From assembly GCF_032191835.1 (NCBI RefSeq), contig NC_083241.1, positions 23,436,001-23,500,000 on the forward strand: DNA of 64,000 nt. Reading direction: 5' to 3'. The DNA comes from Heteronotia binoei (taxonomy: Eukaryota). A program made the position numbers and the translations under genes. Shown here in pieces: positions 18,001 through 21,000 of this stretch. The notes beneath the pieces are model-generated. The model did not search any database. It saw only the letters and a program-made list of their open reading frames with translations, and was not told the origin of the DNA. Within the stretch, counting starts at the first letter, position 1. Every line of letters starts with the position of its first letter.

Positions 18001-21000
18001 TGGGAATCTCTACCCTAGATGTTAGCAATGCCCTAGATTTGAAAACAACATTTTTGAGCAGGCATTTGAAGGTTTTTAACCCTGATCTAGAAGCTCTTCC
18101 TTGACCAAGGTTCCTGTTGCTTTCACAAACTACAACATCCAGACAGCTCTGCACATACACACTGTGTATACCAGCCTATAACCCATACTGTAGCATTCCG
18201 AAAAGCCTCTGCTAGTTAAGACAGTCCCTACACAAAAGAATGAATGGGCACAGATCAGACATTACAAATGGGAAAACCAAGGAACTTTTCAACTCCTCCA
18301 GTTCTACAATAGACTTAAAAGATTACAGTACTTCAGCAGACAATTTTCAAAGGCGTGAGAAGCAATTTATAGTCATATCATTAGACTTGGACTCAACAGT
18401 AGTGTGACAGAAACAATCACACTACTATTCAAATTTATCCATAACACAGTAATTAACCTGCACAATACGTTGGCTGCTGGAGTGTTGTCTGATCTACAAG
18501 CATGTCAAGGAGCCCAAAAAGAGCTTCAGGCTTGCTCTCACAACACCCCCCGCCTCCCCCCCAACCCAGCTGCTTTGCCTGCCATAGCTAACTAAAGACT
18601 TCCTATTTATTGGCAAAGCAGAATTGGCTTACCTCAATTGTATCACTTTTTTCTTTGCTCTTAAGTTCGGTGTCCTTAAATCTCTGTAATTCCATGCTGT
18701 CTCTGTGACCTTTTGTTAAAAAATAATAATAATAATACAGATTTTAGAGAAAAGCACCTAAACATTTAACTCCCAACAGCACTTTGTTGGAATTTGAAAA
18801 AAACCAGAAAACAACTACAAAGGAAATGTATTTATGGCAGATTAGATTTAAGAACTATTGCTTTTCCTACATAAACATGTGCAGTGATGTCCTGAAGCGA
18901 AACCACCCACTGAGGGTGGGTGAATTAGATGGGTGAAAGAACAAACAAACAAACAAACTTCAAGGCTCCAAATATGAATATTTGACTTATGGCATGGATA
19001 CTAGAATTTTAAATAGCTAGTAGAAAAAGCACAGTTCAATATGACAGTATTTTAAATATATAATCTTCACCCCTATATACATGGAAAACAAATTTCTGAG
19101 TACCATGGAACATGGGATCTGCACTCTCTCTCTCTGACACACTGATCCACCATAAAATACATAAGCCTCAAGTTTATAGAGATATACACCGTGGGGAATT
19201 GGGATTCTGCTGGTCTGCCATGCTAAAGCTTCCCATCCCCACATATAGCTGGCCCCCTGTATTTTTTTTGCATGTCGGATGCCCGATTTGAATTGGAGCA
19301 CAGAGCCGAAAGATTGTTGGCCCAGACCCAAGAACCTACTCACCGTGTGACGGTGCAGTTGCACTGGGCCCTACACAAGCATCAAATTTCAACATGCAAA
19401 TAGCAAGTGGGTGAACACACCAAGAGAATTTGCTGAGCCAGCATGATCCCTCACTGTGTGCACATCTCAAAACACACTGCTGTTGCTTTCCTGAACCAAA
19501 CATTCTATTAGGCCAAAGGATGAAGATTATATTAGAAAACAAGACATTGTATCCCAACACCAAATCATTTCTTCCACGACAAGGTACTGTTTATTCATCT
19601 CTCTGGTTAGTGATCCTGAATTCTTTGCATTGAAAGATTAAAAGCAGATTACGGGTAAAACTGACAAACACTGGAAGGGAGAAATATTAGCCATAACCAC
19701 AATGTAGATATATGTGCATTTGTTTGTGGTGGACCATTGAACAAGCTGCTGAAAGCCTGGTCAAGGCCTGTGCACAGCAGGGGAAAGAGGGACTGTTCTC
19801 ATGAGGTATTCCTAGACCCTCCTAATATCCACATGCTAAATATTACACGTGAATGGAATAGACAGTAGAGGAAATGTGTTTCCAAAATCAGTTTCTAGAG
19901 TAGGATTCCTCTGAATTACAAACACTGACCTGCAAATTTTATGATTAAGATCTCTTTGTTCTTCAATAACCAAGCCCGAAAAAAAATATCCATTGAGACA
20001 GATTGATAAAAGAAATTACACTTTAAATAAAGAAGAGACCATTCGTATAGTTTGAAGGAACTGAAGAGTTAAAAAGCACCACAGTAGTCCCCATAGGGCC
20101 ACCTGCAGCCCGAATCCACCCAAGGTACCACACAATCCTTGACAAATCAAACCTTGCAATTTAGATTTGATCCACAGTTTCTGGACTCGTGTAAAGGTCC
20201 TGGAACATAAAGCTTGGTTCTTTCGTGCAGTTTCTTGAGTGCTGTAGGGGAGTCCTTCAACACTCAGTGCTCCTTTCAGATGTTCACTCATCTCATTCCT
20301 GTTCTCATTAGTAGAAGACCGCTGTAACTTATTGGTGGCACTATTCTTCATTGTGTCGGAAGAGACGTAGAGATTCCATTTGTCCATGCAGCCATCTGCG
20401 ACATCGTCACTTTCATTATCGACAAAAGCATGGTTAACGTATCCCTCTACTCCAACGCAAGCTTGGGAGCTGACAGCAAGACATACAGAATGCGAAGCAG
20501 GACAACTACAGCAACCAACGGCAAGTTTAGGAAGTTCCTGCTTGAGTCGGCTATACTTACCCACAAATGCACCAAATTCGACAGTGTTATCTGTGTCGGC
20601 GGCCTTCTCATCCTTGGCTGCAGTTTCTAACTGGCTTTTGCAACTGGGTCGAGAAGGAGTGCTAACAAAAAATTTAGCTGTTGGGGACGTTTGATGCGGC
20701 ATGCTTTTTGAGGAACTGCCCACCTTTTTACTTTTATTACTGCTCTTTGCTGAGTCTGTACCCTGTATTCTTTGACGAAGTTCTGGAGGAGAAAGAGCTC
20801 TTGGGATTAAGGCACTGCCAGAGGAACCTGCCTCTGGAAAGTTGAGTTCATTCCTGTTGGGGAAATCAGTCATCTTATGTCCAGAATCTCTTTCATCTTG
20901 CATAGAAATGTTGCACAGTACAGCATTATTACTTTCAAGGCCTCCTTGGGGGAAAGAGGAACCAAATACATTGCCAATACTGTGCTTCCTCCACATGGAA

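Follow-up and report, generated by a model that had tools for sequence, protein, structure and literature searches.

Does the open frame that follows the TRPM7 coiled-coil exon of Heteronotia binoei encode protein and, if so, through which splice forms? We looked at this question in the window, i.e., the whole stretch of 64,000 nucleotides of DNA that was analysed, to which all positions below refer.

An open frame continues beyond the TRPM7 coiled-coil exon

The minus-strand ORF 20016..21248 encodes 410 aa and is made of the TRPM7 coiled-coil exon and an open stretch downstream of it. The exon was recognized by the Pfam family TRPM_tetra (E=1.6e-16) and was matched by turtle and tuatara TRPM7 in tblastn. 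It starts after the acceptor cctccag/GG (first base 21248; slashes mark splice sites and junctions) and its last base, 20561, lies at the donor GTGG/gtaagtat. Past this donor, 181 stop-free codons lead to the TAA at 20016-20018, in agreement with the sequence-only reading of this locus, which had proposed that the frame has coding potential and is not noise. The strings on which that reading was built, ggagtag/AG (20447/20446), CAAG/GTTTGA (20153), and AATAAA (19595-19590), were all found in place. The leading "GKY" of the extension is the in-frame translation of the donor GTAAGTAT. A second possible donor, with 20153 as the last exon base, is the joint-best in-phase GT of the stretch, yet weak, with 5/9 consensus matches. 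Like the donor at 20561, it is of phase 1, and both are in phase with the acceptor of the next exon. The features needed below are:

20561..21248, minus strand: TRPM7 coiled-coil exon, short (canonical) form, ending EFGAFV-G, donor GTGG/GTAAGTAT
20153..20560, minus strand: in-frame extension (long form of the exon), 408 nt, 136 codons, GKY...GYVNHAF...
20147..20155, minus strand: alternative 5' splice site AAG/GTTTGA, last exon base 20153, phase 1
20019..20152, minus strand: post-donor sequence, intronic flank in the long form or variable tail in the read-through form
20016..20018, minus strand: TAA closing the read-through (kinase-less) frame, seen in the sequence and spanned by the RNA contig 19980-20588 of run X1
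19590..20015, minus strand: likely 3' UTR of the read-through transcript, with AATAAA at 19595-19590 and X1 contigs; the transcript would end here
18633..18709, minus strand: next exon, starting GT CAC AGA (HRDSM...), from the sequence, tblastn, and an X1 junction contig

Given the base composition of the region, 181 codons without a stop would occur with a probability of 1e-5 to 2e-5, versus 2e-4 at a flat rate of 3/64. The remaining two frames of the extension stretch are closed. Elsewhere on the minus strand of the window, sites with at least 181 open codons ahead of them were found only in the TRPM7 exon at 32583-32613 and in a retroelement at about 9.6-14.7 kb.

The extension is kept from bony fish to birds and was lost in mammals

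The same frame was found open after EFGAFVG in at least 83 ORFs or gene models from teleosts, birds, crocodile, and squamate-like relatives, which have motifs in common; these are the 83 of the 120 matches examined that carry the extension. About 70 teleost ORFs run well beyond EFGAFVG, and 11 genomic ORFs of other species span 90-99% of the 410-aa ORF with 57-85% identity. Eight comparison contigs are genomic, each having an upstream intron and an AG before the exon. The sequences called squamate-like (P0001-P0005) appear to be so from their distance to the window and their distinctness from bird, turtle, crocodile, and tuatara sequences. A more distant vertebrate (L007, P0032/P0142), with 52% identity, keeps the extension and the GTTTGA donor, and its exon has fish-like features. 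The blocks common to the extensions are C-x-YP-x-VV, ACL, G-Y-[VI]-N-x-[GA]-F-x-x-D-E, and KLW-x-KSK-x-[QR]-G-L. Within the third of these motifs, N43 and F46 were invariant in 34 sequences and Y41 nearly so.

Unlike these loci, the mammalian ones, which were compared as protein sequences, have no insert homologue, their ORFs meeting a stop 5-64 codons beyond the donor. This is in accordance with the earlier claim that the stretch is absent from canonical human TRPM7. A Pfam search of the 181-aa extension gave nothing significant. When a profile of the insert was compared with 1.84 billion representatives, 14 matches were obtained, all of them TRPM7 fragments or models; none belonged to another family or to TRPM6, the paralogous channel-kinase of the same overall architecture. 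Two other origins, a transposon-derived ORF and a relic common to TRPM6, were dropped since the profile matched TRPM7 only. These results indicate that the extension is real coding sequence, no younger than the last common ancestor of teleosts and tetrapods; lineages from bony fish to reptiles and birds have retained it, and mammals have lost it.

Protein-level constraint ends at the downstream donor

We compared nine loci around the downstream donor, namely the window, three squamate-like loci, two birds, crocodile, the distant vertebrate, and a teleost. The donor core AG/GTTTG was identical in 9/9 of them, and the following base was A in 8/9 (GTTTGC in L005). Some positions of this core are synonymous with respect to the protein, and they too are invariant over teleost-to-bird distances. 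Such invariance of the synonymous positions of GGTTTG calls for a cause at the nucleotide level, e.g., a splice site.

In nucleotide alignments made blind to the frame, all gaps in the exon and in the extension were multiples of 3. The indels of the extension were 48; 3, 15, 3; 48, 3, 9, 6, 3; 6, 12; and 6, 9, 3, 3 bases. Directly 3' of the donor at 20153, gaps of 1, 2, 4, 5, and 11 bases were found. The dN/dS ratio, pooled over three independent close pairs, was 0.11 (0.08-0.15) in the coiled-coil exon, 0.46 (0.34-0.63) in the extension, and 0.89 (0.54-1.48) in the tail past the downstream donor. The value of the extension points to moderate constraint only. Since indels are restricted to multiples of 3 as far as the donor at 20153 and dN/dS rises to 0.89 past it, protein-level selection covers exactly 20560-20153. 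The donor proposed at 20153 by the sequence-only reading is thereby supported, by its invariant core, by the constraint that ends there, and by NCBI models that join there.

In the squamate-like loci, identity over the first 60-130 nt past the donor at 20153 is 0.73-0.81, on a par with the extension, and then falls to about 0.5 in the remaining intron. In this respect, the stretch resembles the conserved flank that regulated splice sites have on their intron side. About 60 nt past the donor (20090-20152, minus strand) are nearly invariant in sauropsids and contain the G-runs TTGGGTGG and TCGGGCTG. This block ends in a donor-like TGCAG/GTGA (here CAG/GTGGCC at 20103, out of phase), and its role may be that of a splicing enhancer or of a decoy U1 site.

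At 20148-20173 (minus strand), the string CAAATCT can pair with AGGTTTG of the downstream donor to give a 7-bp stem with an 8-nt loop. A hairpin over the donor is not claimed, as the columns are invariant and so offer no covariation, and the crocodile lacks the 5' arm.

Public gene models hold both a long and a kinase-less form

The extension of the turkey protein served as the query for a search of gene models, which yielded two main classes. In the first, full-length kinase-bearing NCBI models contain an insert of 139-142 aa joined as ...KSKPQG/HRDSM. They come from Anser cygnoides (X1, 2030 aa), Falco naumanni (X2), Phalacrocorax (X1), Mauremys mutica (2031 aa), and Carettochelys insculpta (X1). 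When aligned to the window by tblastn, the 2031-aa Mauremys protein gave one colinear HSP over 21251-20151 and then 18713-18633, which places its junction at the donor at 20153. As in the window, where the insert is of 136 aa, the insert of these models follows EFGAFVG directly, and the junction codon (...KSK-x-Q-G/HRDSM) and the donor core AG/GTTTGA are the same. The sequences are more divergent than the splice pattern: the insert of the window is only 31-34% identical to the bird inserts, and the whole ORF 57-59% identical to the bird ORFs. The long form is thus genuine but not new, being already contained in predicted bird and turtle gene models. A literature search of incomplete coverage returned no description of a long TRPM7 isoform or insert, or of its function.

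The second class is formed by Ensembl/TrEMBL models of about 15 bird species, Chrysemys, Gopherus, Crocodylus, and Sphenodon, in which both donors are read through and the protein ends in a short hydrophobic tail with no alpha-kinase. For instance, the TrEMBL proteins of the turkey Meleagris (A0A803XU42, 1523 aa) and Crocodylus (A0A7M4FER5, 1579 aa) end in the read-through tail. Models of the same type are found in catfish, Channa, and Caranx. A contig of run X1 from H. binoei has the same shape. The tail itself is not conserved in frame, its sequence and length varying by lineage.

A third and doubtful set of Ensembl bird and turtle models (P0193-P0218) leaves the extension at odd internal points, e.g., GYINCG/IASPFKP, and skips several exons. 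These are probably artefacts of model building or alignment, minor internal donors being possible. A TrEMBL TRPM7 model of the polar bear, A0A452UQ05 (1447 aa), falls into one cluster (P0012) with a mammalian ORF whose frame stays open for 16 codons past the canonical donor. Mammals may therefore also have annotated read-through models without a kinase, which would lack the conserved insert.

Read-through RNA is present in Heteronotia binoei

The stretch 18300-20760 was compared with four RNA runs, X1 as contigs and three others as raw reads (about 6% sampled). The RNA support comes from one study, labelled metatranscriptomic, and the contig pattern is that of the single run X1. Three RNA runs of one study contain 71-81% of the sampled words from 20016-20640. 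The pattern in X1 was as follows:

20559-20760: part of the coiled-coil exon, depth 26
20561>18709: canonical junction, depth 20
20588 to 19980: contig from the exon through the extension and beyond the TAA, depth 10.4
19922-19658: further contig, depth 4.7
18710-19657: distal intron, no coverage
below 18633: next intron, no coverage

The coverage thus stops inside the intron, a pattern expected of a read-through transcript ending near the AATAAA but not of DNA carry-over or of an intron retained uniformly. Neither poly(A) reads nor a pile-up of ends were seen for this transcript in the examined RNA. The contig from 20588 to 19980 (contig 3) crosses 20153 unbroken, so X1 contains no appreciable 20153>18709 form, and all RNA seen to carry the extension is of the read-through type. 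A 20153>18709 joint was listed neither among X1 contigs, which drop rare forms, nor in the raw-read runs, whose depth is too low even for the canonical joint. In these runs, the extension had about 0.7 reads/100 nt versus 0.6 in the distal intron and about 8 in the exons, and is therefore at the background level for the samples of that study. X1 differs from the window at four positions (20271, 20293, 20456, 20571), two of the differences being synonymous, one E319G, and one V265I. None is an indel, which means that the frame is open in the X1 individual.

One could think that the frame is open by chance, or that the stretch is a conserved non-coding intronic element and its RNA is unspliced pre-mRNA or DNA carry-over. 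The background coverage in the raw-read runs would agree with this, as would the absence of a Pfam family and the predicted disorder of the extension. However, the frame has been kept in at least 83 sequences over about 400 My with indels in multiples of 3 only and a dN/dS significantly below 1. Moreover, the empty distal and next introns in X1 argue against both DNA carry-over and uniform pre-mRNA. Taking these points together, we regard a chance or non-coding origin as extremely improbable.

A second possibility is that the selected product is the read-through, kinase-less channel itself, whose composite terminal exon would end at an intronic poly(A) site, and that the downstream GT is no donor in this lineage. 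The X1 contigs (19980-20588 and 19658-19922, then nothing up to the next exon) speak for it, as they represent the sole extension-bearing RNA form seen, and so do the AATAAA at 19590-19595 and the Ensembl models of the same type in many sauropsids and in the three fishes named above. Contrarily, frame constraint and dN/dS below 1 stop exactly at the downstream donor, and indels that shift the frame occur in the tail past it. From teleost to bird, the invariant synonymous positions of GGTTTG call for a cause at the nucleotide level, e.g., a splice site, and the NCBI models do use this donor. In addition, no conserved position of the poly(A) signal was found across loci. We consider this explanation unlikely.

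The extension is probably part of the coiled-coil exon and not a cassette

The headline of the sequence-only reading was a separate 294-nt cassette exon (20446..20153) located between the coiled-coil exon and the next exon. Such an exon is compatible in phase, and an AG is present at 20447/20446. However, the position of this AG is not conserved, no pyrimidine tract accompanies it, and contig 3 of X1 crosses the candidate acceptor (20446..20447, minus strand) unbroken. Frame constraint extends over the 38 codons that precede this AG, where indels are likewise multiples of 3 and conserved residues are found. Furthermore, in all orthologous models the insert begins right at the canonical donor, and the joint 20561>20446 was not seen in the examined RNA. 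The candidate acceptor is not supported, and we judge the existence of the cassette very unlikely.

Two other outcomes mentioned by the same reading fared better. An in-frame extension of the exon by 408 nt matches the NCBI bird and turtle models and the frame and indel evidence, and read-through to the TAA, giving a kinase-less product, is found in the Ensembl models and in the X1 contig. The frame conservation and dN/dS on which it had proposed to judge the extension have also come out on the side of coding. For annotation, this means that the exon has donors at 20561 and 20153, both in phase, as well as a read-through end, and the 294-nt cassette is not to be annotated.

A probable long exon form and a read-through form

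Since selection stops at the donor at 20153, this donor is invariant, and the NCBI models use it, we think that 20560-20153 is most probably the coding part of a long form of the TRPM7 coiled-coil exon, made via a weak but deeply conserved downstream donor, with a read-through kinase-less transcript, which was observed directly, as a second output. According to this scheme, the strong canonical donor GTGG/GTAAGT (20561) and the weak invariant donor AAG/GTTTGA (20153) would both feed the next exon in phase. With the latter in use, an added segment of about 136 residues would separate the coiled coil from the Ser/Thr-rich linker and the alpha-kinase. A transcript in which both donors are skipped would continue to the TAA at 20016 and, as it appears, stop close to the AATAAA at 19590-19595, where the poly(A) site would be located. 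It would encode a channel that also has the insert but lacks the kinase and ends in a short, unconserved tail. The donor at 20153, used in the NCBI long models, was not seen in use in the examined H. binoei RNA; by analogy with these models and from its conservation, we infer that it serves as a donor in this species as well.

The insert is predicted to be disordered around a conserved motif

AlphaFold modelling of the insert gave a pTM of 0.15 and a mean pLDDT of 55, the pLDDT reaching a local maximum of 77 at the GYVN motif. The insert is therefore predicted to be a disordered linker, and the peak suggests a short linear motif. The sequence-only description of GYVNHAF as a YxxPhi-like signal is one possible reading of the motif that is truly conserved, G-Y-[VI]-N-x-[GA]-F-x-x-D-E. 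The Y-x-N of this motif also resembles pY-x-N, a known preference of the Grb2 SH2 domain. As a tentative proposal, TRPM7 of non-mammalian vertebrates may be regulated through a three-way choice at this exon, between a short kinase-coupled form, a long form with a disordered insert of 136-170 aa, and a kinase-less form, with the invariant Y-x-N acting as a putative phosphotyrosine docking site, and this module would have been lost in mammals.

Relation to mammalian TRPM7

The short form of H. binoei corresponds to the canonical mammalian TRPM7 channel-kinase, with the same coiled-coil exon, the same canonical donor, and the next exon starting HRDSM..., and the canonical junction is used here too. 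Research on TRPM7 has been almost entirely mammalian, and mammals are without the insert. Chicken DT40 cells and zebrafish are standard models for TRPM7, and their gene can make long and kinase-less forms that mammalian cDNAs cannot mimic. These forms thus matter for the interpretation of rescue experiments and of results on kinase dependence.

Other features of the locus

A large retroelement occupies 8639-14965 of the window, with long gag/pol-like ORFs at 9039-14655 (minus strand); the TRPM7 intron that contains it is flanked by the exons at about 16478 and 7133. At 56102-56317, also within the TRPM7 locus, the sequence consists of 216 N.
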